From sequence record OK905446.1: a DNA stretch of 64,000 bases; one strand, written 5' to 3'. The position numbers were made by a program, and so were the translations under genes. Each line of letters starts with the position of its first letter. Positions within the stretch are counted from its first letter, which is position 1. Of this stretch, positions 29,638-60,007 are shown piece by piece. The notes beneath the pieces were generated by a model. The model saw nothing but the letters and a program-made list of their open reading frames with translations, did no database searches and was not told the DNA's origin.

Positions 29638-29889
29638 TTATGGTAAACGTAGTTCTTTACCAGTGATGTAGATGTCAGTGTCTGGGTCGTAATACATACC
29701 CTCGCGCTTGTCGTAGTAGTAAACTTTACCATTCAGATCAGTGTACGGTCCCTCAAGACCAGAACGTGACAAATCTGGATACTGTTTGCTATCGACTTTG
29801 CGGTGCTTGACAACACGTTCATGAAACTCTTGTTCAGTTTCTTGAAGCTTCACTTCACCTTTGCTGTGATATTCGTTAAAACCTTTCAT
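29638..29889 (-). CDS. putative internal head protein (late)
   Basis: MKGFNEY...KLQE N-terminus; in late operon. Confidence 0.55.
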   Translation of the reverse strand: MKGFNEYHSKGEVKLQETEQEFHERVVKHRKVDSKQYPDLSRSGLEGPYTDLNGKVYYYDKREGMYYDPDTDIYITGKELRLP

Positions 29890-29901
29890 TGTTTTTCCTT
29901 A

Positions 29902-30255
29902 TTAAAACTTCTCGCGAATGTAACCGCCAGGTGAACCAGTCATCGTTTTAGTGATAACGATACGTTGATCACCAATTGTGAACTCAGCTTCTTTGCGTTT
30001 TTCGTCGATGTAATCAGCAGTAACGCCAGAATTCTTCGAAATGCTGTTAACAAGCTTAGTAAACCAGCCACGTGGTGCTTTCTTGTTGCTAGGTACAGGG
30101 AATGTGAATTGAATATCCCCGTACACCTTGCTCATCATCGGTTGAATCATGCGACCAAACACTTCTTGACCAGACTTCAGAAGAATTTCATCAACTTGGC
30201 TCTTCGGTGTAAATGTGTACGACGATTCAATCATGAATTGATTAAATGTTTTCAT
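29902..30255 (-). CDS. putative internal head protein with capsid-targeting sequence
   Basis: MKTFNQFMIES resembles T4 IP CTS; TATAAATA upstream. Confidence 0.65.
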   Translation of the reverse strand: MKTFNQFMIESSYTFTPKSQVDEILLKSGQEVFGRMIQPMMSKVYGDIQFTFPVPSNKKAPRGWFTKLVNSISKNSGVTADYIDEKRKEAEFTIGDQRIVITKTMTGSPGGYIREKF

Positions 30256-30279
30256 GTTATATCCCTAGTTTGTTTATCG

Positions 30280-30287
30280 TATTTATA
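30280..30287 (-). promoter_or_regulatory. late promoter
   Basis: Exact TATAAATA on minus strand, 25 nt upstream of ATG. Confidence 0.8.
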
Positions 30288-30288
30288 A

Positions 30289-31329
30289 CTAGTAAGCACC
30301 TAGCATTTCTTTCATTTCTTCGTCCGTCATTGTACACGGGAAGTAGAATTCGTCAAGATAATCATCGTACCACATGTAGAATTGAGCTACTAAATCTGGT
30401 GTATGATTCGGAAGTGACGTTGTAGCTTTTGCATTTTCAAGCTTCTCAAGGCGTTCTTGCAGCACTTCAGAGACGTATTCCCACGTGTACTTACCGATTT
30501 TAACGTCACGATAGAATGCAGCGTGCTTCAATGGGAACTCAAGCTTACCAACTTCAAGGATGTCGATTGCTTGATCGATTACTCGCATAGCATGAGAGAT
30601 CGCTTTCCAGTCTGAACCACTAGCAGCACGAGCTTGATACGAACGCGCACCGTATTTGCTCATCATCTTCTCAAGACGACCAGCCGCTTCTTCAAATGAG
30701 ATTTCAAGACCGAATACCTTTTCAAGCACACTGAACGCAGGGTCTTGCAAATCGCTTGCGTCTGTAGTCTTGGGCCCGTGATACCACTGAAAACGCACGT
30801 GAGCGTCTTCTGCGCTTAGTTCCCATAGACGTTGACACAACTCAGGGCTTGAACCCAACTTCGCTTTAGAATCGACGTTGTGCGTCTCTACAGCACGTGC
30901 AAATTCCATAAGGCTGTTTAGTCGTGTACCTTTGATACCGTATTTCTGCGCTTGGTTCAGTGCATAACCCGTCATTGCTTTGACGTTTGATGTCAAGTAT
31001 TTGCGCGTTAGCTCTTGACACATAGCATGGAACGTAGGGTGACAGTCATCTGGGTTCTGTAGTGCGTTGAATGCTAACTCGATAGCATACGACTGACCAC
31101 CTAGAAAGTCGCGCATGAACACTTGAACAGGGATGTATTCGAAGTCTTCATCTTCAGCGCCGTTCTTCGAGAACGCTTTACCAGTTGAATGAACTGAGTT
31201 CTTGATTGCAACACCACGCAATAGTGTACGCAACTCTGGTAAGAAGACAGCTTTGTAATCAGTATCTGACTCTGGCGTGTCTGTGCCATATAGTTTTGAA
31301 CCGAATAGGCTCGTGTATAGTACATTCAT
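30289..31329 (-). CDS. DNA Pol-beta-superfamily nucleotidyltransferase (T4 NrdC.11/RlaP-like)
   Basis: LFGSKLYGTDTPESDTDYKAVF; DWKAISHAMR. Confidence 0.8.
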   Translation of the reverse strand: MNVLYTSLFGSKLYGTDTPESDTDYKAVFLPELRTLLRGVAIKNSVHSTGKAFSKNGAEDEDFEYIPVQVFMRDFLGGQSYAIELAFNALQNPDDCHPTFHAMCQELTRKYLTSNVKAMTGYALNQAQKYGIKGTRLNSLMEFARAVETHNVDSKAKLGSSPELCQRLWELSAEDAHVRFQWYHGPKTTDASDLQDPAFSVLEKVFGLEISFEEAAGRLEKMMSKYGARSYQARAASGSDWKAISHAMRVIDQAIDILEVGKLEFPLKHAAFYRDVKIGKYTWEYVSEVLQERLEKLENAKATTSLPNHTPDLVAQFYMWYDDYLDEFYFPCTMTDEEMKEMLGAY

Positions 31330-31802
31330 AGACCACCTCGTGATGCTTGCATGGCAACGTAGATACGTTTGCCAAATGGTTTAGCGATTGATTCTAGAAT
31401 ATCAACGATGTTATGACCTAGAATCGGTGAAACGTGTTCAATAAAGATGTGTTCACGCTCTTGAGCACACGCAAACGCAACTGAAGAGATAAGAGACTCA
31501 AGATCTAACCCGCTTTGAATAACGAGTGAACCCTCACCAAGTTTTGCTGCCATTTCAGTGTGGCGTTGCTCAGTCACAATCATAGTGCTTTCTCGTACGC
31601 CACGCTGAACGAGCATTCCCATCAGCATAGCGTTCTTGCCACTCCCAGGTCTACCAACAACAACTGTGCTGTCTGAGCCATTGAAGATTTGCAATTCAGA
31701 AACTACTGTCTTCGCGGCGCGAATTAACGATTTTGGAGTCATTTTATACACCTTTTGTTGGATTTTTGAACGTTTCGTCTTTATATGCTGTATGATACGC
31801 AT
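31326..31802 (-). CDS. short P-loop NTPase-like protein
   Basis: VVVGRPGSGKN Walker A; RecA/DnaB-like topology suspected. Confidence 0.6.
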   Translation of the reverse strand: MRIIQHIKTKRSKIQQKVYKMTPKSLIRAAKTVVSELQIFNGSDSTVVVGRPGSGKNAMLMGMLVQRGVRESTMIVTEQRHTEMAAKLGEGSLVIQSGLDLESLISSVAFACAQEREHIFIEHVSPILGHNIVDILESIAKPFGKRIYVAMQASRGGL

Positions 31803-31873
31803 ATTTTACACTTTAGTCAACAATTATTTCAGATTTTTATTGAGATAATTGCTATGCAACACGTAACAAAACA

Positions 31874-32005
31874 CTAAATAAGATAGAGACATTTTACAGT
31901 TTCGAGGGATGTGACTATGTTATCGCATTGGTCACTGCGAGTATTGGTTCTACTATAGTCGCCTCCCTCGCTTTTTAATTTCAAAGGGGCATTTCTGCCC
32001 CTTTT
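31874..32005 (+). ncRNA. candidate structured late antisense RNA
   Basis: CTAAATA box, 16-bp long stem enclosing two hairpins, U-run and bidirectional terminator; no long ORF. Confidence 0.45.
31983..32005. terminator. bidirectional terminator
   Basis: AAAGGGGCA-TTTC-TGCCCCTTTT. Confidence 0.75.
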
Positions 32006-32006
32006 C

Positions 32007-32585
32007 TTATCGTCTCTTCTTACCAAACTTCATCTTAAACCCACTCGATTTCTTCTTAGGCTTCGGCTTAGACAGAACTTTCTTTGGCTTTTCTACTTTC
32101 TTGACTGTAGTAGGCTTCTTGTTCTTCAACTCAGTAGACTTTTTCGGCTCTACTTTCTTCACTTCAACAGGTTTCACGGGAGCTACTGGCTCTACTTTCT
32201 TGATTACAGGCGCAGTTTTTGTCTGATACGGTGTCACTTTGTTGATAATTGGTGCTTGAGTTGGTGCAATGTAGTTCTTTTTACCGGAATCAAAGACATC
32301 ATCTACAATCTCTGCCGCCACAAAACCAATTGCTGCCGCACCCCAATCGAATCCCTCATCTTCAGATTGATGAATCACAACTGGCGCTTGTTGTACAGGT
32401 TGTTGTACAACTTCTTGTACATTATTCACTGGCGGAAAGTCATCGACCGTTGGCGCTTGCATTAGCGGCTGACCTTGCTCGGCATAGTATGCGTTTGTGT
32501 CTAGAGTAGCAGAGCCATTATCACAGCCCGCCAGTACTGCAATCATACTAACGATTGCGATTGTGCGAATTTTCATTTTATACAC
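32007..32585 (-). CDS. lipoprotein with Lys/Pro-rich tail
   Basis: Lipobox VLAGC. Confidence 0.7.
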   Translation of the reverse strand: MYKMKIRTIAIVSMIAVLAGCDNGSATLDTNAYYAEQGQPLMQAPTVDDFPPVNNVQEVVQQPVQQAPVVIHQSEDEGFDWGAAAIGFVAAEIVDDVFDSGKKNYIAPTQAPIINKVTPYQTKTAPVIKKVEPVAPVKPVEVKKVEPKKSTELKNKKPTTVKKVEKPKKVLSKPKPKKKSSGFKMKFGKKRR

Positions 32586-33243
32586 CTTTAAAGTTATCGT
32601 AAAATGCTTTTGCTTCTGGCTTATGTAAGAAAGTATGCCAACGAAGTGCAGCTACATCCGTTTCGACGTTGCGCTCATTGATTGCAACTACATAGCGACC
32701 GCTATCATCTTTACCAAACGTGATGATGCATTCCATGTCACCATTAGTGTCCATCTTCTGCTCGATTTGCTGATCAATACCGTGAGCTTCTTCGCTGAAG
32801 ACAACAGTCTGGTCAATACCAAGAAACTTCTCGATACGGTCAAGCTTCTGAAATGAAGCGTCACCTTGTGTCTTTAACACGCGATTCTGAATGCTCTTGT
32901 CGAACTTCGAATACATCCAAGCATTAGCAATACCGATATTCATACCAATCAGAGACGCACCGACAACAAACATCGAGCCAATCACGATTCGACCACCTGT
33001 AGTAACAGGATAATGATCACCAAAACCGATTGTGCTCATAGCCATCCACACAGTCCAGAATGCATCACCTGGCGTTTTGATGTTGGCAGTTACGTCATTC
33101 ACTTCGAACGCAAACAGAATATTTGATGCTACTAATGCTATTGACATAGACACTGCTATAATCAAAGAGAATATTAGCAGCATATTGTACTGCACAACAC
33201 CATGTTCGTCGTATGACTTAATGTGTTTCTTCAATCGTTTCAT
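32578..33243 (-). CDS. KcsA-like potassium channel
   Basis: TM-pore-TM; DAFWTVWMAMSTIGFGDHYPVT..GR filter. Confidence 0.85.
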   Translation of the reverse strand: MKRLKKHIKSYDEHGVVQYNMLLIFSLIIAVSMSIALVASNILFAFEVNDVTANIKTPGDAFWTVWMAMSTIGFGDHYPVTTGGRIVIGSMFVVGASLIGMNIGIANAWMYSKFDKSIQNRVLKTQGDASFQKLDRIEKFLGIDQTVVFSEEAHGIDQQIEQKMDTNGDMECIITFGKDDSGRYVVAINERNVETDVAALRWHTFLHKPEAKAFYDNFKGV

Positions 33244-33565
33244 GTTGTTCCTCTGGCAAGTGGATGTTGAATTGAAAGTCAGATTTTAGTTCTGCGTAGT
33301 CAATCTCGCTCAGTGAATCCTTGATGAATTTGATTGATGATTTCAATTCACCATACGGCAGAATAACTTGATTTGATTGACAGTACTCGATGTCAAATCG
33401 TTCTACTAACACGTTCATGTGATAGTCACGAAAAACTTGACGCTGAACGCCAGTCATGCATCCGTAAGCGAATGCAAATGCATTGCGATACTCTTGTTGG
33501 TTAACGATAGCTGCATCTTTCTGTTCTACTAGAATTTCGACAGTGCGTAGGTCAGTTGCGTTCAT
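33218..33565 (-). CDS. early hypothetical protein
   Basis: PeSL cassette and conserved RBS upstream. Confidence 0.75.
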   Translation of the reverse strand: MNATDLRTVEILVEQKDAAIVNQQEYRNAFAFAYGCMTGVQRQVFRDYHMNVLVERFDIEYCQSNQVILPYGELKSSIKFIKDSLSEIDYAELKSDFQFNIHLPEEQHETIEETH

Positions 33566-33612
33566 AATGTTCTCTCTTTGTGTATTTCGTTTCGATGAAG
33601 CTATAATACGCG

Positions 33613-33638
33613 AAAGGGCTGACCGAAGTCAACCCTTT
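33613..33638 (-). promoter_or_regulatory. stem-loop early promoter cassette (PeSL-like) with C(UUCG)G loop
   Basis: AAAGGGTTGAC-TTCG-GTCAGCCCTTT; -35 TTGACT. Confidence 0.8.
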
Positions 33639-33646
33639 TATCAAAC

Positions 33647-34690
33647 TTATTTCAAAGTATTTTTGTCTAGCTCTTTCAGAACTAGGTATTCGCTACAGCG
33701 CAACTTAGTGTTGTTGTAGTCGCTCGGTACTGACACAACATCACGTGGGTTGACTTTACACAGTACAACACGATTGCCAGCAGCACCACCGAAGTGTGGC
33801 AAGTAACCTTTCGAACATACATGCAGACCCGCAGAACACGTTTGGTCTTTGTTGTCGTTCACTTGGTGACGTAGCATCCACACGCGAGTGCCCGGCTTGT
33901 TGCTCATGCTATTGCTGTGAATGTCGTTGTAGTTGTCGCGAATCTTCTTGTACGCTAAGAAGTGACCATCGTCTGTTAGTTCGATGTCAGCAGCTTCTAA
34001 GAAGCCGTAAAGCTCTTCTACAGCGCGACGTGACGGGTTAGTGATTAGGTTCTCGAAGAACTTCACTAGCTTGGTCACTTGAGACTTGTCGCCTTCTTCC
34101 ATTGCTTCAAGAATGCGGTCAGTCATGCCACCGTCGATGTCAAGATCACGATACTTAACAACGCCACCCTTGACAACTACGTTGCCTAGCATGAACTCTT
34201 CGATGCCTTTAGCAACATCAAGCAATGACACTGCAAGTTCACCGTCAGACTCAAGCAATGCAGCAACGATTTTGCTGTAGTTCGGTGCTGTAATGTCAGC
34301 AGAGAACGCTTGACCTTTAAAGGTAAACGACACGTTGACTGGCGTAATGACGTAAGCGAAGTCTTCAATTGCTTCTTCTAGCTTCTGATCAAGAGTCTTT
34401 TCAGGCTCAGGCGCTTTCATCTTCTGAGTTGGCTCAGTTTTAGTGCCAGTAGCGTCTAGCAACTCGTCTAGATTCGCTTTGAAGTCAGTCGAAAGTGACT
34501 TAACTTTTGCAGGTCGCTTAACGACTTGTTTCGCAGTGTTCAGACTAAATTTGCCTTCACGGTGTTCAGCAAGCACACGGCGCAGAGTAGTTGGCGAAGT
34601 ACCGTGCTTCGCCGCATTTTCTTTCTGAGACATACCGTTTGCAGATGCTTTAACGATAGACTGTTTTGTTTCGATTGGCAAATTAACCAT
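33647..34690 (-). CDS. rIIB: RIIB protein
   Basis: N-terminal HTH; DGHFLAYK, CSAGLHVC, VNPRDVVSVPSDY...RC. Confidence 0.92.
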   Translation of the reverse strand: MVNLPIETKQSIVKASANGMSQKENAAKHGTSPTTLRRVLAEHREGKFSLNTAKQVVKRPAKVKSLSTDFKANLDELLDATGTKTEPTQKMKAPEPEKTLDQKLEEAIEDFAYVITPVNVSFTFKGQAFSADITAPNYSKIVAALLESDGELAVSLLDVAKGIEEFMLGNVVVKGGVVKYRDLDIDGGMTDRILEAMEEGDKSQVTKLVKFFENLITNPSRRAVEELYGFLEAADIELTDDGHFLAYKKIRDNYNDIHSNSMSNKPGTRVWMLRHQVNDNKDQTCSAGLHVCSKGYLPHFGGAAGNRVVLCKVNPRDVVSVPSDYNNTKLRCSEYLVLKELDKNTLK

Positions 34691-36758
34691 TGCGTTTTCC
34701 TCTCAAGAGATTAATTAGTTGTTTAGCTGCGTCGTCGTCGGTGCAATTATCGACGAGTTTGAACAGCAAATTGTATTTCGGTGTTTCTTGAATCGACGTT
34801 AGTTTATTCAAGTGTTTATCGACTTCAGCCGTACGAACGTCGCGAACAATCGAGAAGTTGTTACACAGACGATCAATCGTTTGTACACATGCTTCAGCGC
34901 CACCAGTGTTCGGATAACCAAAGTGTTCACGAACAGTTGAGTTAGCCCACGTGTTTTCAAGCTTACTGCGCCAACCGTAAAGATTGTTGTCAACTGCATA
35001 CGATTTCCAGTTGATTTTACTACGCAATTCACGCTTGTTAAACTTAATATCGAAGATATTAATCGCGTTTTCGTTTTCTTTAATGTGTACGTACTCAGGA
35101 CGACGAGCAATATACACAACATCAATGCCTTTGATGCGCATGATTAGTTCAATTGTACCAAGTGAACGATGGTAATCTTCACCATGACCACATTCTGGTA
35201 CTTTCTCAACGTAATCGCGGAACAGACTCACGAAATATAGCTTGTCGTTCTTCAATACTTCACGCTTAACGTCAGACGCAGCTACTGTACGGCGATTGTT
35301 TTCGTCAATGCGCATTTCGTACAGACGAATCGTTGGTGATACTGGCTTTTTAGCGACAGTCTTCTTCTTAGGCGTGTAGTTCGCTTTCAGATCAGATGTC
35401 TTCAGCACTTTGTATTCACAATCACGAAGACGTTCTTTGAAGAACGGTAGTGCAGCAGTCGTTGACGGCTTTTCGTCATGATGATAGAACACCACTTTCG
35501 ACTCTTCACGTACGTATTCTTTAGCGATACCAACGCCACCAGATTTCATGTCATCAACGATGATGTAAATCGGCTTTTTCTCGTACTCTTTGCGTGGATC
35601 AAGCAAGTCGTACGGTCGTGAGAAGTTAGTACGACGCTGAACGCCTTCTTTGTTGCTGTGTTCAGGGCGTAGCTGAACAACTTTACCAAGAATGGCGAAG
35701 TCTTTCAGCATATCGTTTGAATACGACATAACTGGTTGACCGTCGAATGTCATCTTCTTCAAGATCGCATCGTTAAAACGATTGTCACATGCACGGAATG
35801 CATCACCGATGTGCGTGAACTTCTGATCATCAACCCACTTCTGTGCTTCATCAAGGAACTTACCATTGATGACGTTCACACGCTTATTGATGTTCTCAAT
35901 CGTGTAGTCATCGTAGTGAAGCTCTTCACGTGATGCACTGACATCTAGCTCACCGATAGGGAACTCAATGAACAGATCAGAATTCTTGAAGTAGCTACGA
36001 ACAAGCTGAATGTCTTTGATGTAGCTTTCACTCAACGGGTAGCAAACATTGCCCATCACTGCATACACATCACCAGAACGCCAAGAGTTTTTGTTCGTTT
36101 CAGTGAAATAACCAGCCATTTGAGTGAATTTACGCTCTGGTAGAGTCATATTCGTCTCAACAGCAGGTGATTTGAAGTAAGGCATTACTCGGTTTGCAGC
36201 GTCTTTAAAGCGACTAAAGTCTTCTTTACGCACTGGCACGATTACTTCAACGCCGTCTGGTTCATCAGTCGGTGCAGGCTCTGACATACAAGTGATCGCT
36301 GGCTCACCTTTATCAAGATAAGCAGAGTAAACAGCTTTCAAACCGTTCTTCGTTGACTTAACAGTAAACGATTGACCGTTGTTGTAGCTGAATGGCGTCT
36401 TTGAACCTAGACCCATTGCACCAATCACGTCGTTTGAGTCGTCTTTAGTTGAATCAAACACAGTCGTGTACACGCCAAAGATCTCGTCGTCGCTCATGCC
36501 ACAACCAAAGTCTTTCACGCTGAACCACGGTTCAAACTGATTTGGCAAGTGAACTTCAATCGCTTTACCGAGATTTTTGTTCATTTGATGCGCATCCCAA
36601 CCATTACACGTAAGCTCACGCACGATAGCTAGAATTGGATCTTTGTAAAGCGTAGTCGAGATAATACGAAAGCCTTTTGCACTTGCTTTCATATTAAAGC
36701 CAGCCGTACGCATCTTACCAGACGTTTGTACGGTACTATCAGGGGTATGGATAATCAT
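34683..36758 (-). CDS. rIIA: RIIA protein (GHKL ATPase N-terminus)
   Basis: AIVRELTCNGWDAH, DFGCGM, GAMGLGSKTPFSY; adjacent to rIIB. Confidence 0.92.
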   Translation of the reverse strand: MIIHTPDSTVQTSGKMRTAGFNMKASAKGFRIISTTLYKDPILAIVRELTCNGWDAHQMNKNLGKAIEVHLPNQFEPWFSVKDFGCGMSDDEIFGVYTTVFDSTKDDSNDVIGAMGLGSKTPFSYNNGQSFTVKSTKNGLKAVYSAYLDKGEPAITCMSEPAPTDEPDGVEVIVPVRKEDFSRFKDAANRVMPYFKSPAVETNMTLPERKFTQMAGYFTETNKNSWRSGDVYAVMGNVCYPLSESYIKDIQLVRSYFKNSDLFIEFPIGELDVSASREELHYDDYTIENINKRVNVINGKFLDEAQKWVDDQKFTHIGDAFRACDNRFNDAILKKMTFDGQPVMSYSNDMLKDFAILGKVVQLRPEHSNKEGVQRRTNFSRPYDLLDPRKEYEKKPIYIIVDDMKSGGVGIAKEYVREESKVVFYHHDEKPSTTAALPFFKERLRDCEYKVLKTSDLKANYTPKKKTVAKKPVSPTIRLYEMRIDENNRRTVAASDVKREVLKNDKLYFVSLFRDYVEKVPECGHGEDYHRSLGTIELIMRIKGIDVVYIARRPEYVHIKENENAINIFDIKFNKRELRSKINWKSYAVDNNLYGWRSKLENTWANSTVREHFGYPNTGGAEACVQTIDRLCNNFSIVRDVRTAEVDKHLNKLTSIQETPKYNLLFKLVDNCTDDDAAKQLINLLRGKRNG

Positions 36759-36765
36759 GTATTTC

Positions 36766-36903
36766 TCACATTTCGTTAATTACCTCGTGAATCGCGTCTA
36801 CTGCTTCATCGTGAGGTACATTGTACTGGTTAATCAGACAATCAAGAATGTCATTGAACTCAAGTTCAGACTCAATCATGTCTTTTATCATGTTGTCAAT
36901 CAT
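36766..36903 (-). CDS. small acidic protein
   Basis: Start adjusted to MIDNMI (GAGAG SD). Confidence 0.6.
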   Translation of the reverse strand: MIDNMIKDMIESELEFNDILDCLINQYNVPHDEAVDAIHEVINEM

Positions 36904-36958
36904 ATTGCTCTCCTTAGTTTTAAGAGAATTATACACGACTGACAACATGTGTCAAGAA

Positions 36959-37270
36959 CTATCGAGGGATTGGCGTGCGAAGAAGTTCAGCTTCTTGCAA
37001 TGCAGCGCGATAAGCATCAGGGAACGACTTCTCTACCACGCTTGGCTCGATGATAGTCGAAGAACCACCACTCGGTAACTTGGCGTTTTTGCTAACGTAG
37101 TTGCTACGTGAACTCAACTCAATGTACTTGCGCTTACCATCGTCTAAATCAACGACAAGCAATACATTCATTGTATACGAACGACCTGCGTTCTTAGCTC
37201 GAAGAACAAAGTCACCGTCTTTAATCTCACGACCAAAGAAATCGTGTTGTTTAATCATTGTATGCCTCAC
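36959..37270 (-). CDS. hypothetical protein (start probably MIKQHD)
   Basis: ORF track. Confidence 0.65.
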   Translation of the reverse strand: MRHTMIKQHDFFGREIKDGDFVLRAKNAGRSYTMNVLLVVDLDDGKRKYIELSSRSNYVSKNAKLPSGGSSTIIEPSVVEKSFPDAYRAALQEAELLRTPIPR

Positions 37271-37520
37271 TTAACGTTGCATTACCGAAGTACCAACTAC
37301 CTGCAAAGCAGATAGTCTTACAGTTTTCTTTGGTGAAATCTTGCCAGAAGTCAACTTGCCAACCGTTTGTTTCAAGATCTTGAGCTTCATACCCAAGTTC
37401 TTGCATGTAGTTCACAACATCACATGGCGTAAACTCTTGCACGCTGTACGAACTCGTTGACCCAGCTTCGATTTTATCAACAGCATCATTGATCACTGTT
37501 TGGATTCGTGTCTCGCTCAT
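37251..37520 (-). CDS. hypothetical protein
   Basis: ORF track. Confidence 0.7.
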   Translation of the reverse strand: MSETRIQTVINDAVDKIEAGSTSSYSVQEFTPCDVVNYMQELGYEAQDLETNGWQVDFWQDFTKENCKTICFAGSWYFGNATLSEAYND

Positions 37521-37924
37521 CGGTGATTAACATCCCCATTGTGATTACTAACATTGCCATGCACGACGCCACAGCGAATATCGCCGTTGTGCGACTTAAC
37601 ATTACCACCCACGTAACCATCAATTTCGATGTCGCCGTTAGTTGTTTCAGCATCACCAGCAACTGATCCGTTGACTTTAATATCGCCATTCGTGTTCTGA
37701 ACAAGCGTACAATCGCCTTCAACGTATACATTGATGATATGTTCGTTCACTTCGCCTTGAGGTCGACCATCGACAACGACTTGACTATTGTTGATTGTCA
37801 CGCTCTTGCCGTGATACACTTGACCATTTACTTTAACAGTACCTGAGTTTGAACTCATATTAACCGTGAAATCTCGCATAAGTTTCCTTAATAATTTTCT
37901 CATAAACGTTTCGCTACGTGCCAC
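37517..37924 (-). CDS. beta-solenoid repeat protein (DUF4097/bactofilin-like; start may be MSSNSG)
   Basis: Repeated NGDI.V.G.V.G units. Confidence 0.65.
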   Translation of the reverse strand: MARSETFMRKLLRKLMRDFTVNMSSNSGTVKVNGQVYHGKSVTINNSQVVVDGRPQGEVNEHIINVYVEGDCTLVQNTNGDIKVNGSVAGDAETTNGDIEIDGYVGGNVKSHNGDIRCGVVHGNVSNHNGDVNHR

Positions 37925-38109
37925 ATGTACACATCGCCTAGAGTGGAGTCAGTTGAAACCAAGTAAGTCTCTAGCAATAGTTCGCATGGGCGACGTAGCA
38001 CTTGAATGCCAAAAATCGAATAGTGAACTTCACCGGTGACGATTTTCATGCGTTGTGGGTGCTCGAATGTGTCTAATAGACCGTCGTAAGTTTCAACTGT
38101 AGTAATCAT
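37900..38109 (-). CDS. hypothetical protein
   Basis: ORF track. Confidence 0.55.
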   Translation of the reverse strand: MITTVETYDGLLDTFEHPQRMKIVTGEVHYSIFGIQVLRRPCELLLETYLVSTDSTLGDVYMWHVAKRL

Positions 38110-38678
38110 ATTACCATTAACTCCGCTTTACCTGTGTAACCTTTTTGAAATACAAAGTGCGCGTACTCAATAGAGTCTGTGCCTTTTGTACCGTGAAATG
38201 ATGGTCTACGATGATGAACCATCACTGCTCTCAGGGGCATGATGTCCCAGAAAGGCTTTCGTTTGATACTACCTAGCCAGTTTAGACGCTGTAGCATGAC
38301 TACATAACCATTGTCTTGTACTTCTGAAATTGCTTTCTCAGCAAAACCAACTGACAAGCTAAATGGCGGATTAGTCATGATCATGTCGTAGTAGTCTTTC
38401 TGAACAGTCGTTTCAAGATAGTTTGCAATGATGTGAGCATGACTATCTTCACGAATGTCCATTGTGTCTATATCAACATGATACAAGTTCTTGTATGCTA
38501 CTGGATAAGCTGCTTTATGCTCTGAACACCCACCACATGATGGATCGAGCACGTACATTGCTGCCATGCTCTTATCAGGTTGAATACGCGCTTCAAACGC
38601 TTGAAGAAACTCTTCAACTATCCAGTCTGGCGTAGCGTAGTAATCGTCTTTATTGACATTACCTTTTGTGCTACTCAT
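38106..38678 (-). CDS. DNA N6-adenine methyltransferase (phage type)
   Basis: DYYATP, VLDPSCG (motif I), MTNPPF (motif IV). Confidence 0.8.
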   Translation of the reverse strand: MSSTKGNVNKDDYYATPDWIVEEFLQAFEARIQPDKSMAAMYVLDPSCGGCSEHKAAYPVAYKNLYHVDIDTMDIREDSHAHIIANYLETTVQKDYYDMIMTNPPFSLSVGFAEKAISEVQDNGYVVMLQRLNWLGSIKRKPFWDIMPLRAVMVHHRRPSFHGTKGTDSIEYAHFVFQKGYTGKAELMVI

Positions 38679-39215
38679 TTAACCATTTACTGTTAAGTAT
38701 TTGTCTCGCGACATTTCATAGATGTTACCATCTACTTCAAGGTCGATGAATACATCACCCCAGTTAATGTTGCTGCTCAAGATAGTTGGCATATCATCAA
38801 CGCTGATACCCATTAGCTCAGTGACTACATGCTGTGCATAGTCTTCAGACGTACCTTCGAATACCCAACAATCTTGAATCTTCTCGGCTGCATCTTCGTA
38901 CGACATGCAAATGTTCTGATCATAGATGAATTCGCAAAGCTCACGCTCTGATTCATCAAGGTCAAACCAAGCAAGTAGACCATCGAAGTCTAGTTCTTCG
39001 TCTTGTAAATCATTTGGGATGTTGTGCCATTCAAATGCTACATAAGCTGTACCCTCATGGTTGTCCAAAAAGTCTTTGAACTCATATGGGCAAACAGTGT
39101 AGTAATTACTCATACCAGCACATGAAACGGTGACAGCAACTTCATCGTCAGATACATGGTCGATAGCTAATGCTTTTAGCTCTTCTTCACGTTCACTCAA
39201 GTTCATAGTCTTCAC
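38679..39215 (-). CDS. ardA: ArdA-like antirestriction protein
   Basis: Very acidic; G..EDYAQ..V......P..L...INW..V..DL...G C-terminal pattern. Confidence 0.7.
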   Translation of the reverse strand: MKTMNLSEREEELKALAIDHVSDDEVAVTVSCAGMSNYYTVCPYEFKDFLDNHEGTAYVAFEWHNIPNDLQDEELDFDGLLAWFDLDESERELCEFIYDQNICMSYEDAAEKIQDCWVFEGTSEDYAQHVVTELMGISVDDMPTILSSNINWGDVFIDLEVDGNIYEMSRDKYLTVNG

Positions 39216-39240
39216 TCACATAAATTGCTTCAAGGACTGT

Positions 39241-39298
39241 ATATTATGATCAAAAAAGGGGACTGTCAACAACTTTTTCAAGTTATTTTCAGTCCCCT
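39241..39298 (-). promoter_or_regulatory. early promoter with long-loop inverted repeat
   Basis: TTGACA 39264-39269, 17 nt, TAATAT; GGGGACTG...CAGTCCCC. Confidence 0.6.
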
Positions 39299-39344
39299 AA
39301 TACTACTAATACCTCTAACTTCACTAAAACTACTAATACTACTA
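39297..39344 (-). repeat. in-phase TAG/TAT triplet tract
   Basis: TAG TAG TAT TAG TAG TTT TAG TGA AGT TAG AGG TAT TAG TAG TAT TAG. Confidence 0.7.
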
Positions 39345-39381
39345 AGATGATGCGGAATTTTTCCGCCTTATCCGTTTCTGA

Positions 39382-39690
39382 TTAGACCTTGAAGTGACGT
39401 TTCACGAAGTTTTTCAAGCGTGGTCCACTGGCTTTATCTTCATGCGGGAAGTAATCAACCTCTTTCCCGCCTTTGGTGATTAATACACCTGCTTCTTCTG
39501 AAGAAACACCACCAGTTGCGATAGCTACGTTACGTGCGTTGGCAATTCTTGTCAATTCGTCACGCATCACATCGTCTGAATGAAGCTCAACCTCTTTACC
39601 ATCTACATTTACCAGACCGAATACTTCATATCCAGCAGGTAGTTCATACACGTTTTGCGCTTCTGCTAAAAAATGTTTGAATGATTGCAT
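39382..39690 (-). CDS. putative internal head protein with capsid-targeting sequence
   Basis: MQSFKHFLAEA N-terminus. Confidence 0.6.
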   Translation of the reverse strand: MQSFKHFLAEAQNVYELPAGYEVFGLVNVDGKEVELHSDDVMRDELTRIANARNVAIATGGVSSEEAGVLITKGGKEVDYFPHEDKASGPRLKNFVKRHFKV

Positions 39691-40247: not shown

Positions 40248-40261
40248 TTTATTTCACCCAT

Positions 40262-49250: not shown

Positions 49251-50177
49251 TTACTTATAGAGCAATGCTTTGTTGATTTTGATGTTAACTACTGAGCCTT
49301 TCGATAGACCCTCAGAAACCCACACACGTTGAACACCCATACGTTGGAATTCTTCTTCGTATGTCGTTGCAATGTAGTTTGCGAGATTTTCAACTGTAGT
49401 TTCAGTTGGTATCACGATCATGTTTTCGTGGCGCATGTAGAAATTGCCGCGCTGTGACTTGTACGACACTTCATCTTCTTTGCGAATGTTGTCTGACCAA
49501 GCAATATAACCGCTCATTTCTTTGGCGATGCGCTTCAGTACCTTGCGACCATTGCTATTCAAGTGCTTATCAACAGCAATGAACGAACGGTGACCGTGTG
49601 CGATATTCTGACACCCGTAAGAAGTGCTTGAACGCAGCCCGTGAGCGTAATTGAATTCGACGTGACTGTTTGCCCATGATGGTAAGTCAAACGACTCTGA
49701 AAGCTCTACAGCGACGTGTGTAACGGGATAACCTTGCTTGCGTAGCTGCTCAAGTAGCATATCTTCAAGATACTCAGCAACATATGACATGTACAGCGAA
49801 TCGCTAGGGATTCTGAAGTCTGTTTCAATCAGTTCGCTAGGTTTGATGACTTGATACCAGTCGTTTACCGTTGACGCTGCGTGGAAAACTGGCGTGTCTA
49901 CTTGCATTCGAAGACGATCTTCAACTTGAGACAACACCGCATCACTAAACCCATCAACGATAACTAGACGATGGTCGATAGCGAATTCAGAATCGTCTAC
50001 AAGATGCTTGATTGCTTTCTTACAGCCGCTGAAATCAATCACGACTTGTTCAGTTTCGTCAACTTCACCGGTAATCTCAGCACACAGATTGTAGCTGTTA
50101 CCATTAATTTCACCCATATCGTCAACCCATGCATGGTCGATACACGTGATATTGTTTAAAAACATTGTACTTTTCAT
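49251..50177 (-). CDS. queD: 6-carboxytetrahydropterin synthase (double-domain QueD-like)
   Basis: CIDHA, IDHRL, GCQNIAHGHRS, TTVENLA, EGLSKG. Confidence 0.8.
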   Translation of the reverse strand: MKSTMFLNNITCIDHAWVDDMGEINGNSYNLCAEITGEVDETEQVVIDFSGCKKAIKHLVDDSEFAIDHRLVIVDGFSDAVLSQVEDRLRMQVDTPVFHAASTVNDWYQVIKPSELIETDFRIPSDSLYMSYVAEYLEDMLLEQLRKQGYPVTHVAVELSESFDLPSWANSHVEFNYAHGLRSSTSYGCQNIAHGHRSFIAVDKHLNSNGRKVLKRIAKEMSGYIAWSDNIRKEDEVSYKSQRGNFYMRHENMIVIPTETTVENLANYIATTYEEEFQRMGVQRVWVSEGLSKGSVVNIKINKALLYK

Positions 50178-50231
50178 ATGTTTCTCTCTTGTTAAAGCTC
50201 TATTATAAGTCCGAATTACTTATATTAAACA

Positions 50232-50684
50232 TTATTCGTCTTCGAACGAAATAACTTTGACACCGCGATCACGTAGCCAATGCCACCAGTCGGGTTGTGA
50301 GCCACTGTAAATCGAACCAACAATGAGAATTTTGATACCAGCCGCTACAATCAGCTTGGCACAGTTGTGACATGGCGACGCTGTTACATACATCGTTGCG
50401 CCTTCAGTTGATATGCCAGCGCGGGCAGCGTAGCAAATCGCGTTTTGCTCGGCATGTATCTCGTGAATCTCTGACCATTGACGGTGCGTTAATTCACCGT
50501 AATCAGCAGTATCGCGACAATGAATCATACCAGACGGCGTGCCATTGTAACCATGAGAGATAATGCGATCATTCTTGACGATGACAGCACCTACTTGCTT
50601 CTGCTTGCAGGTGCTTTTCTTAGCAAATGACTTGGCGATGTCAAGATACACCAAGTCATAATAGCTTTTGTTCTTCGGGTACAT
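50232..50684 (-). CDS. cd: dCMP deaminase
   Basis: GYNGTPSG, HAEQNAI, PCHNC. Confidence 0.9.
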   Translation of the reverse strand: MYPKNKSYYDLVYLDIAKSFAKKSTCKQKQVGAVIVKNDRIISHGYNGTPSGMIHCRDTADYGELTHRQWSEIHEIHAEQNAICYAARAGISTEGATMYVTASPCHNCAKLIVAAGIKILIVGSIYSGSQPDWWHWLRDRGVKVISFEDE

Positions 50685-51359: not shown

Positions 51360-51438
51360 TTCGTTTTCCTCTTTCGTTTCGATGTAGCTATAATAGGCGT
51401 TTTGAGTATTTGATGCAACCACTTTTGCTATAAAAACG

Positions 51439-51464
51439 AAAAAAGGTAGCCGAAGCTACCTTTT
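51439..51464 (-). terminator. rho-independent terminator (UUCG)
   Basis: AAAAGGTAGC-TTCG-GCTACCTTTTTT. Confidence 0.85.
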
Positions 51465-51466
51465 CA

Positions 51467-52306
51467 TTAAAGACCAAGACGATCTAGCGTGCCTTGACTC
51501 AGAGTTGAATCGCTTTGCATTTCAAGATCGCGAACACTCTTCCAAATAGTGATTTCGGTATCATGAACGATCCAAATCTTGCCTGCGATAACCGCAATTT
51601 TCTGCATATCATCATACCAAGTCTCGTCTTCTTCTTCATAATGCCATTCTAAATCGTAGAAAGCATCATACCAAGCGTCTGACATGCGAATCGGACCCGA
51701 TGTTAGATTGACTTTACCATTGACGATTTTCAGTCTGTGGAAGTTATTAAGAAGCCAATCACCATTCCCCTCTGTGGCTTTGACAATAGCAGCGTCGTTG
51801 ACCTCATACAGATCAAGCATTTCAGTGCCCCATGCAGTATCGTAACCAGTAGGGCTTTCGACTGTCTGATCTCGGTCTAATACGAATGAATCACCATACA
51901 TCTTCATCTTGAACCCAATTTCTTTACTGAAACGCTCTGCCATGCGCTTGTATAGTCGAGTTCTCTTACGCGCATCGGATGAATTTGAGTCTTGGAATGC
52001 GCTGAATTTGATACGGTCAATAGTTCGAATCTGCATTTCACGCTTGATTTCAGAAATAACCGTTGCAAAAACAGTCATTGCGTCTTTCGGGTCGCCTTTT
52101 GCTAGATTGTAGAAGTAAGATGACGCGCCTGGCGGTTTTATCATGAAGTCTACTGATAATGAGTTGTTGCTATCATCAAAATACAACCCGATCATGTATT
52201 CAGTTTGACCAATCATGAAGTAACTCTGATTCCCGCGGCGATTGGTGATTGGCGCTGGGCGATCAAACGCTTCTGTAAGTTCGTTCTGGTATTCGCTAAA
52301 TTTCAT
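51467..52306 (-). CDS. putative virion-internal protein, N-domain paralogous to 58568-60007
   Basis: MKFSEYQNELTEA start; VFATV...FSA...R..LY motif. Confidence 0.55.
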   Translation of the reverse strand: MKFSEYQNELTEAFDRPAPITNRRGNQSYFMIGQTEYMIGLYFDDSNNSLSVDFMIKPPGASSYFYNLAKGDPKDAMTVFATVISEIKREMQIRTIDRIKFSAFQDSNSSDARKRTRLYKRMAERFSKEIGFKMKMYGDSFVLDRDQTVESPTGYDTAWGTEMLDLYEVNDAAIVKATEGNGDWLLNNFHRLKIVNGKVNLTSGPIRMSDAWYDAFYDLEWHYEEEDETWYDDMQKIAVIAGKIWIVHDTEITIWKSVRDLEMQSDSTLSQGTLDRLGL

Positions 52307-55526: not shown

Positions 55527-56582
55527 ATGATTATTTTTGAAAGCGTTCAATCGCAGCGTGCATTAGAGTACGCATCTAAGTTTATCGTCGATAGACTTGA
55601 GACACAATTAGAAGCTGCTCTAAGTAGCCCACCATTCGACCCAAACAAACTCGCACTTAATACCAAGAATCTGAACATCAAAACTGGTGAAACTGAATTC
55701 GATGCACTTCTTGCACGTGGTATTGTCGCGTATCTTAAATTAGATAACCAAAACCCGACTGAACTCGGCGTATGGCGTGGTGCATTACATGACCCACAAG
55801 CAGGCGAAGCGGGTAACTTGCAAATCACCGTAGACATCACCGGTGTTACTGCGGTTAGCCAGATCATGGCTAAATTTCGAGTCAAGAAAGACCAAATGTA
55901 CAGCACTGCATTGCATGAACTGCAACACGCTTACGATAACTGGCGTTCTGGTGATATAGCAGACTTCGACACTCGCGACGAAGAGGGCGTGTATCAACAC
56001 TCAGGGCGTAATAGAGCTTACATTGATAAAGAGTTCATCCGACACGCTAAAGCCGGTCACAAAGCGTCTCACGACGAATATCAGAACTATTCTCATGAGA
56101 TTAACGCACGATATGCACAAGCAATAGCTGACACTAAGGCACACTTCAAGGGTTCACCTGCTACCACAGAAGCATGGATTATGAATTTCAAGAAGTATTT
56201 TGATGGTTGGTTTAATATACCAGACGACGCGAAGAAGCGATTGCTTGCGCGTGCAGGGGCTGAACATAGCGAATACAAAAAGCCGTTTCACGGCAAAGAA
56301 AGCAGCTTGCTATATGCTCTGAAAGGCTTCGATGTCAAATACACCAGAGATACTAAGTTCAGCAAGATTGGCTATTGGTTCAGTAAATTTGAATACAACG
56401 GTCGAACGTCTGCCGACTTACTTGATCGACTTGAGCTTTTAGCTCACAAAACTGAAGGTGTTGTTGCATTGCCACTTGATGACATTCGCGCTAACCCTGC
56501 TCTCTTTGATGAAATGAAAAGACGCATGAGCAGTGGTGAATGGGATCGAATGGGTGCTAATCACATGATCTACAGACCATAA
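55527..56582 (+). CDS. zincin-like metallopeptidase-domain protein (late, inverted)
   Basis: ALHELQHAYD (HExxH) and downstream YQNYSHEINAR. Confidence 0.7.
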   Translation: MIIFESVQSQRALEYASKFIVDRLETQLEAALSSPPFDPNKLALNTKNLNIKTGETEFDALLARGIVAYLKLDNQNPTELGVWRGALHDPQAGEAGNLQITVDITGVTAVSQIMAKFRVKKDQMYSTALHELQHAYDNWRSGDIADFDTRDEEGVYQHSGRNRAYIDKEFIRHAKAGHKASHDEYQNYSHEINARYAQAIADTKAHFKGSPATTEAWIMNFKKYFDGWFNIPDDAKKRLLARAGAEHSEYKKPFHGKESSLLYALKGFDVKYTRDTKFSKIGYWFSKFEYNGRTSADLLDRLELLAHKTEGVVALPLDDIRANPALFDEMKRRMSSGEWDRMGANHMIYRP

Positions 56583-56605
56583 AAAAGGGGCTAAATGCCC
56601 CTTTT
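56581..56605. terminator. bidirectional terminator
   Basis: AAAAAAGGGGC-TAAAT-GCCCCTTTT. Confidence 0.85.
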
Positions 56606-57612: not shown

Positions 57613-58231
57613 TGCGCACCTTTTCGATGACTTTATCTACTTGATCTAGATTATCTTTCCAGCTAATTAAAGCACGAGCGTAATAATCATCAGTTTGACT
57701 TGCATCGTCTGACAATTCATGAACCGTTGCGTTGGCAATACAGTCTCTGAAGTACTCAAGCTGCTCAACCATGTCTTCGTATTTCGCTTTCTCGAACTTA
57801 TACATCGGGATATAGCGTTTGCTCCCACCCCAACTGTATACGTGCAAGTTAGTTAAATCAGGTTGAATCTTGTACGCTTCGTCGATGTTGCATAGACGTT
57901 CAACCGTTCGCTCGTCTTCGATCATCTGATCTTCAATTTTCTGCTTGAACTTTTCAACTAGTTCTGGGTGGTCGTCACCAAGCTCTTTGATGAAACGCGC
58001 ATACATACCAAGACTGTGCTCAGAAGAGTCTTTAACTTCGGCAATGATGTCTTCGCGAGACAATAATTTCTTCGGTTCAGTGCTACGATTGTTGTAATCA
58101 TAGATGTAACCGTTTTTCAAATCAATGCCGTTGCCGTTCGTAGCGAACAAATGATCTAGAACCGAAAAACGAGTTGGGAAGATCGTGTGGTATTCTTGCA
58201 TTGCGTGCTTGATGTAGTCAGCTAAAAGCAT
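57602..58231 (-). CDS. hypothetical protein
   Basis: ORF track. Confidence 0.75.
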   Translation of the reverse strand: MLLADYIKHAMQEYHTIFPTRFSVLDHLFATNGNGIDLKNGYIYDYNNRSTEPKKLLSREDIIAEVKDSSEHSLGMYARFIKELGDDHPELVEKFKQKIEDQMIEDERTVERLCNIDEAYKIQPDLTNLHVYSWGGSKRYIPMYKFEKAKYEDMVEQLEYFRDCIANATVHELSDDASQTDDYYARALISWKDNLDQVDKVIEKVRNAS

Positions 58232-58242
58232 GTGATTCTCTC

Positions 58243-58497
58243 TTAAATCATGAATTCAATGTCGCCAATTTCGTCGCCAAACTCTGCTTCGAGCTTGCTA
58301 ACGACGAATTCTTCATATTCAGATAGTTCTAACTCAGGGTTAGTAACTTCTTCAATGAAAATACTCATGCCTTGAGTAAACGGGAGAAATACGCCATGTA
58401 CGTCTTCTCGGTCAATCGCAGCTTCAATTCGATTCATGAACTCATCAGAGTCATAATTCTCAGTTGGGATGTTGATGAAAATCTCTGTCAATTCCAT
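58243..58497 (-). CDS. very acidic small protein
   Basis: Start adjusted to MELTEI after PeSL cassette. Confidence 0.7.
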   Translation of the reverse strand: MELTEIFINIPTENYDSDEFMNRIEAAIDREDVHGVFLPFTQGMSIFIEEVTNPELELSEYEEFVVSKLEAEFGDEIGDIEFMI

Positions 58498-58537
58498 AAT
58501 TATTTCCTCATTTAATTTGTTATACGTAGAATACACG

Positions 58538-58563
58538 AAAGGGCTGACTACTGTCAACCCTTT
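58538..58563 (-). promoter_or_regulatory. stem-loop early promoter cassette (PeSL-like)
   Basis: Same core as 20828-20853. Confidence 0.75.
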
Positions 58564-58567
58564 TTCA

Positions 58568-60007
58568 TTATTCTTCGTCTTCGTCTTTGTACTCAGAGAC
58601 ATCAACGCCGTTTTCTTCAGCGATTTCGATTGCTTTTGCTTCAGCAGCGGGACCGAAGTGACCGTTCATGATGTATTCGAAGTTCTCTTCTCGGTAAGCA
58701 TCACCGTGTTGCAGAATTGCTTCAACCGCTTCTTCAGAACCTTCCGAATTGAAGTAGTAGTTCATTGCAGCTTGGCGAACATCTTCGTCATGGTCGTCTA
58801 CTAGCTCTTCAAGACGGTAGCCTTGTTCAGCAACGTAAACACGCTCTTCATAGTCGTCAGAATCATCAATCATGCGATCCCAAATGTCTTCTGCCATCGA
58901 ACGACCGAATTCACCTTCGTAGCGTTTCGCATATGTGATACGTGTATCTGCGTCGTCGTTCTCGATAGCCCAATCCCATGCAGCTTCGCGCACGTCTTCG
59001 TCTGAGTCAAGAACAAGATCCCAGATAGCATAGCCATTTTCAGCAGCTTGCTTACGATGTTCCCAATCACTAGACGTAGCTAGTTTATCACCCATTTCAT
59101 AGTCTGTGCGAAGTACAGCGTTTCGAACGTCTTCATCATCATGGAAAATCAGTTCATCGTGCATCAGACCCCATTCAGCGATACGAACTAGAGTTTGCCA
59201 ATCTGCGTGTTCGATGATCTCATCTTCGCGTCCGTCATTGATCCATGCTTCGATTTGGTATTGTTCAGCATCGTTGATCGTGTCTTCTAGACTCGCTTGA
59301 CCGAACGGTGCATCATAGCTTGATGGGCGTTCATGCTCATTGGTAAGCGTGAATCCAACTGAGCCACTCATTTGCATCAATGCTTGGTTAACGTCGTTGT
59401 CATTCATCGACAGAATTGAGCGAGTCACGTTCTTACGAACAGAACGGAAATCGTTTGCACCTGCGGCAAGACGAGAAAGCCAACGGTCGCTAATGTCAGT
59501 TGAGTAACCGTATTCTTTACCGAACGTCAACGATAGGGCGTAGTAAAGCATAGGACGAGAGATCAAGTCTTTCAATAGCTTTTTCTTGCTTTCTTCGTCT
59601 AAGCGTTGCGCTTCACGACGGTTGTTTTGCAGTGCGTAGTACTCGTGATTCTTAGATAATTCGTACGCCGCGCTGAAGTCATATTCATACGGCTTCATGC
59701 CCATTTCTTCTTCGTACGTCTCGGTGAATTCACGTAGTGTAGTCAAGACGCCAGAAAATACCGCTGCCGCAGAGTGACCCGCACGACCAGTTTGTGAATA
59801 ACCGCCACGGTTTTGGAAAGAAATAGTGAAATAACCAGGGTTGCTTTCGTCTACGTCAACTTTAAATTCTTCGCCAGCAGCATTGAAGCGTGCTGAAGTT
59901 TCGCCAGTTCCGTTCTCATGACCCCAATCCCAATCAATGTCGATATTGGCACGGTCTGAGATTTCGTCAAGACGAACTTCTTGATAAAATTGTTCAAACA
60001 GTTTCAT
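58568..60007 (-). CDS. putative virion-internal acidic protein with HEAT/LRV-like repeats
   Basis: MKLFEQFYQE start; D.DEDVR.AA repeats; late box upstream. Confidence 0.6.
   Translation of the reverse strand: MKLFEQFYQEVRLDEISDRANIDIDWDWGHENGTGETSARFNAAGEEFKVDVDESNPGYFTISFQNRGGYSQTGRAGHSAAAVFSGVLTTLREFTETYEEEMGMKPYEYDFSAAYELSKNHEYYALQNNRREAQRLDEESKKKLLKDLISRPMLYYALSLTFGKEYGYSTDISDRWLSRLAAGANDFRSVRKNVTRSILSMNDNDVNQALMQMSGSVGFTLTNEHERPSSYDAPFGQASLEDTINDAEQYQIEAWINDGREDEIIEHADWQTLVRIAEWGLMHDELIFHDDEDVRNAVLRTDYEMGDKLATSSDWEHRKQAAENGYAIWDLVLDSDEDVREAAWDWAIENDDADTRITYAKRYEGEFGRSMAEDIWDRMIDDSDDYEERVYVAEQGYRLEELVDDHDEDVRQAAMNYYFNSEGSEEAVEAILQHGDAYREENFEYIMNGHFGPAAEAKAIEIAEENGVDVSEYKDEDEE

Follow-up and report, generated by a model that had tools for sequence, protein, structure and literature searches.

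Does Vibrio phage VS1, a KVP40-like phage of the Straboviridae, load its head with a set of internal proteins by means of a T4-type N-terminal leader? The question is raised by six genes dispersed between positions 29638 and 60007 of the 64-kb stretch analysed here (the window), which corresponds to VS1 184271-248270, the end of the VS1 record OK905446.1. Of all phage proteins, internal head proteins reach the host first, and those of T4 include a restriction-system inhibitor. To our knowledge, they are almost never annotated outside the T-even phages, and their mature parts evolve too fast for homology searches. A preliminary description of the window had likened the N-termini of the six genes to the T4 capsid-targeting sequence and proposed that up to six otherwise unrelated proteins are packaged and delivered, likely as anti-defence or host-takeover factors. 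We place at roughly 0.62 the probability that the leader genes of VS1 encode internal head proteins, with T4-type loading through the leader and trimming by a gp21-type protease. Judged from sequence and by analogy with T4, their products would probably be packaged in the head and possibly injected. With genes named by the letter c and the length of their product in amino acids, c117, c102 and c479 make a strong case for an internal head protein, c83 and c279 a fair one and c72 a weak one.

Positions 29000-45000 of the window are 100% identical to positions 213270-229270 of VS1 (248,270 bp, unannotated), whose nearest relatives are VS2 and QD01 (97.7%); KVP40-type, ValKK3/VH7D-type and nt-1-type phages show 81-84% identity to it. 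The remainder of VS1, outside the window, was covered by stretches L003 to L006, whose coordinates are local to each stretch. For comparison we used annotated stretches of QD01 and KVP40, the whole genome of the KVP40-type phage PVA8 and two parts of T4 (NC_000866.4). Translation of the open reading frames (ORFs) showed that all six genes are real and lie on the minus strand, with the positions and N-termini first reported for them:

29902-30255, minus strand: c117, 117 aa; full leader with F4, F7, M8 and E10; predicted mature part of 107 aa with an isoelectric point (pI) of 9.6
29638-29889, minus strand: c83, 83 aa; F4 and Y7, then L15-Q-E17; 12 nt behind c117
39382-39690, minus strand: c102, 102 aa; full leader with F4, F7, L8, A9, E10 and A11
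42742-42960, minus strand: c72, ORF of 72 aa; F4, F7 and E9, no E10; the weakest candidate
51467-52306, minus strand: c279, 279 aa; leader one residue early (F3, Y6), then L10-T-E12 followed by A13
58568-60007, minus strand: c479, 479 aa, pI 4.3; full leader with F4, F7, Y8 and E10

The T4 leaders, translated from the T4 record, have an aromatic residue at position 4, Phe7 and Ile8-Ala9-Glu10, with Ala11 next, in ipII and ipIII; ipI has Phe4 and Phe7 with an Ile-x-Glu site at 17-19, which leaves a mature protein of 76 residues, as reported for IPI (PMC3012670). Mutational mapping of IPIII indicated that the first 10 residues are enough for packaging, with positions 4 and 7 involved in targeting and 8 and 10 in processing (PMC9026906). 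The full T4 pattern (Phe4, Phe7, Met/Leu/Tyr8, Glu10) is found in c117, c102 and c479. The aromatic pair is F4/F7 in these three and in c72, F4/Y7 in c83 and a shifted F3/Y6 in c279, and the hydrophobic-x-Glu site lies at 8-10 in c117, c102 and c479, at 15-17 in c83 and at 10-12 in c279; c72 has no hydrophobic-8/Glu10 site (Asn at 8, Glu at 9). Compared with the T4 record and with the IPIII mapping, the proposed likeness to the capsid-targeting sequence is strong in the first three genes, moderate in c83 and c279, and weak in c72.

That this likeness arose by chance among some 420 short N-termini seems very improbable. The motif is indeed short, c72, c83 and c279 fit a loosened version only, and the loosened version also catches two probably unrelated ORFs in VS1 and one in T4. 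However, the strict motif (aromatic-x-x-aromatic-hydrophobic-x-Glu, starting at residue 3-6) occurs at five N-termini among the 422 non-overlapping ORFs of VS1, against 0.57 expected from its internal rate (ca. 9-fold, Poisson P = 3e-4), the motif residues are conserved in orthologues, and leader genes are associated with late-promoter boxes (P = 8e-4; see below). In a control census of 50 kb of T4 with 86 annotated features, strict matches were limited to ipII and ipIII, and loose ones to ipI and the one other ORF. The leader pattern in VS1 is not a chance product. One ORF from the loose VS1 census, of 111 aa at window positions 12413-12748 (minus strand), has Tyr3 and Tyr6 followed by Ile-Glu and is conserved in PVA8; it misfits the hydrophobic-x-Glu rule and is probably unrelated to the leader set.

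The six genes are not the whole set, and the estimate of up to six proved too low, since VS1 carries the leader on at least five additional genes beyond the window, with strict leaders in c481, c215 and c67 in a genome-wide scan:

L003 15679-17124: c481, 481 aa, strict leader; conserved in PVA8
L003 15022-15669: c215, 215 aa, strict leader; conserved in PVA8
L005 27219-27398: c59, with a late box TATAAATA; pI 9.8
L005 28256-28459: c67, with a late box TCTAAATA; pI 10.5
L003 22283-23164, minus strand: a paralogue of c279, with a perfect TATAAATA box

Genes c481 and c215 immediately follow gp24 and a gp55-like gene, and a strong terminator ends the pair. In c59 and c67, which are both small and lysine-rich, the leader begins two residues further in, and the two genes come just after a cluster of 27 tRNA genes; by analogy in position and properties, they are the best counterparts of the T4 internal proteins. 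A census of PVA8 retrieved the same core leader set and no new strict leader genes. The VS1, KVP40 and nt-1 versions of the leader genes are labelled 'hypothetical protein' in the records examined, and the paper comparing nt-1 and KVP40 names no internal proteins for these phages (PMC4122927). By eye, c215 contains a glycine-rich, methyltransferase-like stretch, for which Pfam gave no match.

Past the first ca. 10 residues, most pairs of leader genes show no similarity, and within the leader the synonymous codons differ and DNA identity is low; selection therefore acts on the peptide. Orthologues show which residues it retains. In c117, found in six records from the VS1 group and the nt-1/CZ01 group only, Phe4, Phe7 and Glu10 are fixed while positions 8 and 9 vary inside the hydrophobic and small classes. 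The near-orphan c102 (six phage records, from VS1 group and nt-1/CZ01 phages, and two matches in 1.8 billion representative proteins) is 90% identical between VS1 and nt-1, and four of the ca. 10 differences fall at leader positions 2, 3, 5 and 6, with 4 and 7-11 unchanged; the nt-1 version equals the T4 ipII/III leader at 8 of 11 positions. Likewise, in the c479 family (seq­uences from seven members, down to 49% identity) Lys2, Phe4, Phe7, Tyr8, Glu10 and Val11 are invariant and positions 3, 5, 6 and 9 vary. The c83 family (10 sequences) has an IPI-like layout, with its late Leu15-x-Glu17, in which Phe4 and Glu17 never change, position 7 alternates between Tyr and Phe and position 15 between Leu and Ile. 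Across nine sequences of the c279 family, with identity as low as 41%, 11 of the 14 leading residues do not vary, F3, Y6, Leu10, Glu12 and Ala13 among them. That the motif residues are fixed while their neighbours vary, at the same positions as in IPIII, supports a role in targeting and processing (PMC9026906).

Evidence on expression comes from signals around the genes, which include the two late boxes and the closing hairpins of the preliminary description:

30280-30287, minus strand: late-promoter box TATAAATA, 24 nt before the c117 ATG at 30255
29613-29636, minus strand: intrinsic terminator directly after the c83 stop, closing the c117-c83 unit
60054-60076, minus strand: intrinsic terminator just upstream of the c479 late box
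60035-60042, minus strand: late-promoter box TCTAAATA, 27 nt before the c479 ATG at 60007; conserved in the PVA8 orthologue
58528-58563, minus strand: PeSL-like stem-loop (58563-58538, with a TTGACA box) and -10 box, directly after c479
39241-39297, minus strand: PeSL-like element after c102; its hairpin (39297-39258) carries a TTGACA -35 box and is followed by a T-run and a -10 box
51440-51465, minus strand: intrinsic terminator directly after c279

Both boxes were recovered with the gaps listed, and the hairpins that close the two islands, after c83 and after c479, are real. Across the VS1 genome, the perfect box TATAAATA occurs in 16 copies and is not over-represented, and 12 of them are located 5-60 nt before a gene start; positioned boxes precede, among others, gp18, gp19, gp22, gp23 and gp24. 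The variant TCTAAATA is as well positioned (9 of 12 copies), and other one-mismatch variants are mostly not (e.g. 2 of 18 and 2 of 17), which makes TCTAAATA a credible late promoter in VS1. Among the 23 positioned boxes, five stand before genes of the leader type (c117, c479, c59, c67 and a c279 paralogue), and 4 of 10 leader genes have their own late box versus 21 of 422 ORFs overall, the association given above. Since c83 lies 12 nt behind c117 and ahead of the terminator, it would belong to the same late unit, and the genome-wide positioning thus supports predicted late expression of c117, c83 and c479.

The same region shows how such genes may be gained. KVP40 does not have c117, and the same late box and 5' untranslated region (UTR) stand there directly before its c83 orthologue; nt-1 retains the VS1 arrangement, with the box and 5' UTR of c117 conserved. 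The gene c117 therefore looks like an insertion that separated a late promoter from an older gene with the leader. Its late promoter-UTR cassette is near-identical to that of c59 and is absent from all other late genes. Gene c102 is missing from the corresponding site in KVP40, and c72 is a clean insertion of ca. 206 bp between gene 31 and the following gene, relative to QD01 and KVP40. The elements after c102 and c479 resemble PeSL cassettes, in which a stem-loop with a TTGACA -35 box is followed by a -10 box beside indel-prone ORFs, an architecture linked to indels in nt-1 and KVP40 (PMC4122927); both elements show the stem-loop -35 box and the spaced -10 box, and the one after c102 has an indel neighbour. 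PeSLs are early-promoter elements, unlike the c117/c59 cassette, a late promoter with its 5' UTR that is undescribed in that paper. Several imperfect repeats of the type TTAGTAGTA occur between c102 and its hairpin (39298-39345, minus strand) and are conserved in nt-1.

These arrangements also bear on the idea that the N-terminus common to these genes is a relic of descent or serves expression, either a cassette of promoter, 5' UTR and first codons copied by recombination or codons that are good for translation initiation, and that the proteins are ordinary cytoplasmic early or late products. Lys2 and A-rich early codons are common in phage genes, and the near-identical cassette of c117 and c59, the location of c117 exactly between a conserved late promoter and c83, and the PeSL-like elements at c102 and c479 would all suit a copied signal. 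We nevertheless consider it improbable, because DNA identity across the leaders is low and their synonymous codons differ, because the fixed residues are the aromatics and the hydrophobic-x-Glu site and not the codons nearest to the ATG (positions 2, 3, 5 and 6 drift), and because a translation signal does not explain a motif found at offsets of +1 and +2 (c481, c59 and c67). Moreover, the same residues are functional in T4 IPIII (PMC9026906).

For leader-directed packaging and trimming, VS1 encodes the corresponding head machinery: gp20, gp68, gp21 (49% identical to T4 gp21), gp22 and gp23. The propeptide junction of VS1 gp23, Leu-x-Glu before Ala, aligns with the T4 site, and gp21 and gp22 retain Leu-x-Glu near their N-termini; VS1 gp24 apparently has no short T4 propeptide. 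A plausible sequence of events would begin with transcription, in part supported by the boxes, of c117 with c83 and of c479 from late promoters, the other leader genes probably depending on early transcripts of their neighbours or on read-through, an option also open to the T4 ip genes. The leader, with its key aromatics at 4 and 7, would then bind the gp22/gp68 scaffolding core during prohead assembly, and the protease would cut after the Glu of the hydrophobic-x-Glu site at 8-10, or of its shifted versions at 10-12 or 15-17, freeing the mature protein inside the head. By analogy with T4 alone, the mature proteins might finally exit with the DNA at infection. The cargo would be a mixture of clade-conserved proteins (c83, c279 and its paralogues, c479, c481, c215, c59 and c67) and fast-turnover accessory ones (c117, c102 and c72), with new cargo gained as gene-sized cassettes behind an existing late promoter and leader context, or beside PeSL elements.

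Distribution bears directly on what the cargo does. Genes c83 (49 records), c279 (48-49) and c479 (48) are found in Vibrio T4-like jumbo phages exclusively and are core to that clade. Their presence in essentially every genome of the clade fits assembly better than an arms race, and suggests that the proteins might be targeted to the prohead as structural or core components and not as injected effectors: accessory to the scaffold, DNA-condensing or size-determining, akin to T4 gp67/gp68 or to a bulk role of IPII/IPIII, and after cleavage degraded or DNA-bound with no action on the host. VS1 gp68 itself starts in a related way and has several Leu/Ile-x-Glu sites, c59 and c67 resemble DNA-binding internal proteins in being small, lysine-rich and late, and library searches recognised no enzyme or inhibitor family in any cargo. 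Against a purely structural set, c117, c102 and c72 are patchy and gained by indels, as is typical of host-interaction genes and of the T-even IP locus (PMC4122927, PMC9026906); a 54-kDa acidic HEAT-repeat protein such as c479 and two to five diverging c279 paralogues per genome are unexpected for a scaffold; and the N-domain fold of c279 recurs in Alt-type and multidomain effector-like phage proteins. On balance we regard a structural role for the whole set as rather unlikely. Within the preferred reading, internal head proteins loaded by the leader, an injected anti-defence role appears possible for the fast-turnover genes and has no support for the clade-wide ones, whose role may be structural.

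Function could not be read from sequence for the six genes: PHROGs returned families of unknown function only, NCBIfam gave sub-threshold noise, sequence and profile searches of the PDB gave nothing, and Pfam yielded only a weak HEAT match, in c479. The predicted structure of c479 (predicted local distance difference test score, pLDDT, 77) shows a disordered leader, an alpha/beta N-domain of moderate confidence and a confident C-terminal HEAT/ARM-like solenoid, with pLDDT below 50 for residues 1-21 and above 90 for residues 240-470. Pfam HEAT or HEAT_2 matched this C-terminal half in five of seven family members (best E 5.8e-6), and Foldseek retrieved ARM, importin-alpha and alphaRep proteins. 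In the c279 model (pLDDT 84), an alpha/beta domain at the N-terminus is joined to a beta-rich one at the C-terminus, and residues 1-10 average ca. 50, so that in both predictions the leader would lie outside the fold. A scan of IMG/VR with c479 found KVP40 and VH7D only.

Although the cargo is unrelated for most pairs, as first proposed, c279 and c479 may share their N-terminal domain. Starting at the leader, the profile of c279 (with its paralogues, two to five copies per genome) can be aligned to that of c479 at 39% probability (E 3e-4), and the N-terminal domains of the two models have the same strand-helix order and topology; they are probable distant paralogues on these comparisons, a relationship that is not established. 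In Foldseek searches of the PDB, the c279 model gave no match at E <= 1e-3, with weak similarity to the GNAT fold (E 2e-3 to 0.7) and to the RNase E small domain. We set aside a GNAT acetyltransferase reading of the c279/c479 N-domain, which had weak fold matches only and, by eye, no clear cofactor-binding motif. Against predicted viral structures the same model gave 43 matches at E <= 1e-3, among them Alt-type ADP-ribosyltransferases from a number of T4-like phages (E 8e-5 to 7e-4), and its N-domain fold reappears in large multidomain phage proteins that also contain zeta-toxin, ParB/Srx or deaminase domains. This hints, as a lead only, that the N-domain might be a recurrent module of head-delivered proteins such as those described before (PMC5512222, PMC9503650). 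A stretch of ca. 22 nt with a TATTAT-type -10 box follows the terminators of both c279 (51380-51440) and c215 (L003 ca. 14930-15000), which suggests a repeated promoter or 5'-UTR cassette for the following gene.

Several observations weigh against the interpretation as internal head proteins. The mature parts are acidic in five of the six (pI 5.6 in c83, 5.6 in c102, 4.3 in c72, 4.9 in c279 and 4.3 in c479), with only c117 basic (9.6), whereas those of T4 IPI-III are basic (9.0-9.7); c479 alone has 109 Asp and Glu versus 44 Lys and Arg in its 54 kDa. Internal Leu/Ile-x-Glu sites are not depleted in the mature proteins (23 observed vs 18 expected), and we dropped such depletion as an uninformative mark of protease exposure. 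Codon usage fails to split early from late genes (leave-one-out means of 0.002 and -0.011, sd ca. 0.015) and was also dropped as an indicator of timing, c117 and c83 scoring 'early' despite a perfect late box. As already reported for c102, c72 and c279, none of them has a late box, here within 600 nt; this weakens the case and is not fatal, because the 80 nt ahead of T4 ipI, ipII and ipIII likewise contain early-type promoter and hairpin sequences and no perfect late box. The invariant N-terminus of c279 continues into the folded domain, so its conservation is less diagnostic and could be structural, and the c279 paralogue with a late box retains Leu-x-Glu before Ala and not the aromatic pair. 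Apart from having no Glu10, c72 is present in two genomes only (VS1 and VS2). The statistics, finally, rest on a crude ORF call and not on curated genes, and the literature searched yields no virion proteome, N-terminal sequence or expression data for KVP40-like phages, so that packaging, cleavage and injection are all inferred.

In comparison with known systems, the set most resembles T4 IPI-III: leaders of ca. 10 residues, at most 17-19, that combine aromatics at 4 and 7 with a hydrophobic-x-Glu site for the protease, mature parts that are unrelated, and genes on the early strand among early genes that are gained and lost between close relatives. Like ipI, c59 and c67 adjoin a tRNA cluster. 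The VS1 mature parts, however, have no sequence similarity to T4 proteins; the cargo is mostly acidic and up to 54 kDa, versus basic proteins of 8-20 kDa in T4; the genes occupy more than six loci versus two in T4; and some leaders are shifted by 1-2 residues. Packaging is established for the T4 proteins, of which IPI blocks GmrSD, and predicted for those of VS1.

T4 Alt, a head-packaged, gp21-processed ADP-ribosyltransferase (ART), is likewise a large protein with a short N-terminal propeptide ending in Leu/Ile-x-Glu, and alt, whose box is TATAAATA, and c479 both lie on the early strand behind a terminator followed by a late box. The resemblance of the c279 model to predicted Alt-type structures is at fold level only. 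Homology of c279 and c479 to T4 Alt was rejected, since hhalign of the family profiles gave 0.1% probability and the VS1 Alt-like ORF was also negative, and no ART domain is detectable in either protein. The separate Alt-like ORF of VS1 lies tail-to-tail with the c279 paralogue of L003:

L003 20607-22247, plus strand: weak Alt-like ORF, matching T4 Alt residues 367-584 at a tblastn E of 0.005, with CATAAATA 31 nt upstream

Polyvalent and MuF-fused head-packaged effectors (Iyer et al. 2017, PMC5512222; PMC9503650) similarly bring diverse host-directed domains from the head, and the recurrence of the c279 N-domain fold recalls them; the VS1 proteins, unlike these, have one or two domains, no fusion to MuF or portal proteins and a short cleavable leader. 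The ejection proteins of giant phages (SPN3US and the phiKZ group; PMC5694885) are also several inner-head proteins processed at x-x-Glu sites by a T4-gp21-like protease, and include paralogues with conserved N-termini and a divergent remainder. Their propeptides, however, are ca. 80-130 residues long, whereas the VS1 leaders have 9-17, as in T4.

Other features of the window were noted in passing. Two perfect TATAAATA boxes lie 17 nt apart near its start (305-329, plus strand). A potassium-channel-like gene, so annotated in QD01, VH7D and ValKK3, is found among early genes at 32578-33243 (minus strand). Positions 44080-50684 (minus strand) hold a 7-deazaguanine/queuosine-type block (QueC-like, GTP cyclohydrolase I family and neighbours, with names from the records of QD01 and KVP40), which probably forms a pathway that modifies DNA or tRNA, and a dCMP-deaminase-like gene comes after it. 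Inside the block, an ORF of 233 aa at 47795-48537 (plus strand) resembles a free-standing homing endonuclease and has TATAAATA 33 nt before it. A lone plus-strand gene in a minus-strand block (55527-56582; 351 aa, with an HExxH-type motif and no family match) has CCTAAATA 32 nt upstream and a terminator at 56583-56605, and may be a late gene.

In all, the mechanism is known from T4, and the VS1 proteins are new, unannotated examples; VS1 departs from T4 in the size of the set (ca. 10 or more per genome), its dispersal, the large acidic cargo, the shifted leaders and the shared late promoter-UTR cassette. More tentatively, and with doubt, KVP40-like phages could run a larger and more modular head-delivery system than T4, with ca. 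10 or more leader proteins per genome. Some of these might share an Alt-like N-domain fused to a HEAT solenoid, a beta-rich domain or possibly an ART, although we hold this as speculative as the modular system itself; equally tentative is that the cargo would be captured by ORFs dropped behind a reusable cassette of late promoter, UTR and leader. If this modular delivery were real, the leader could read the injected proteome straight from sequence across the Straboviridae. If the leader rule holds, it would in any case allow candidate packaged proteins to be listed from sequence in broad-host-range vibriophages, and KVP40-like vibriophages are under development for aquaculture. It would also mean that the T4 code for targeting and processing has been retained across a deep split of the Straboviridae.

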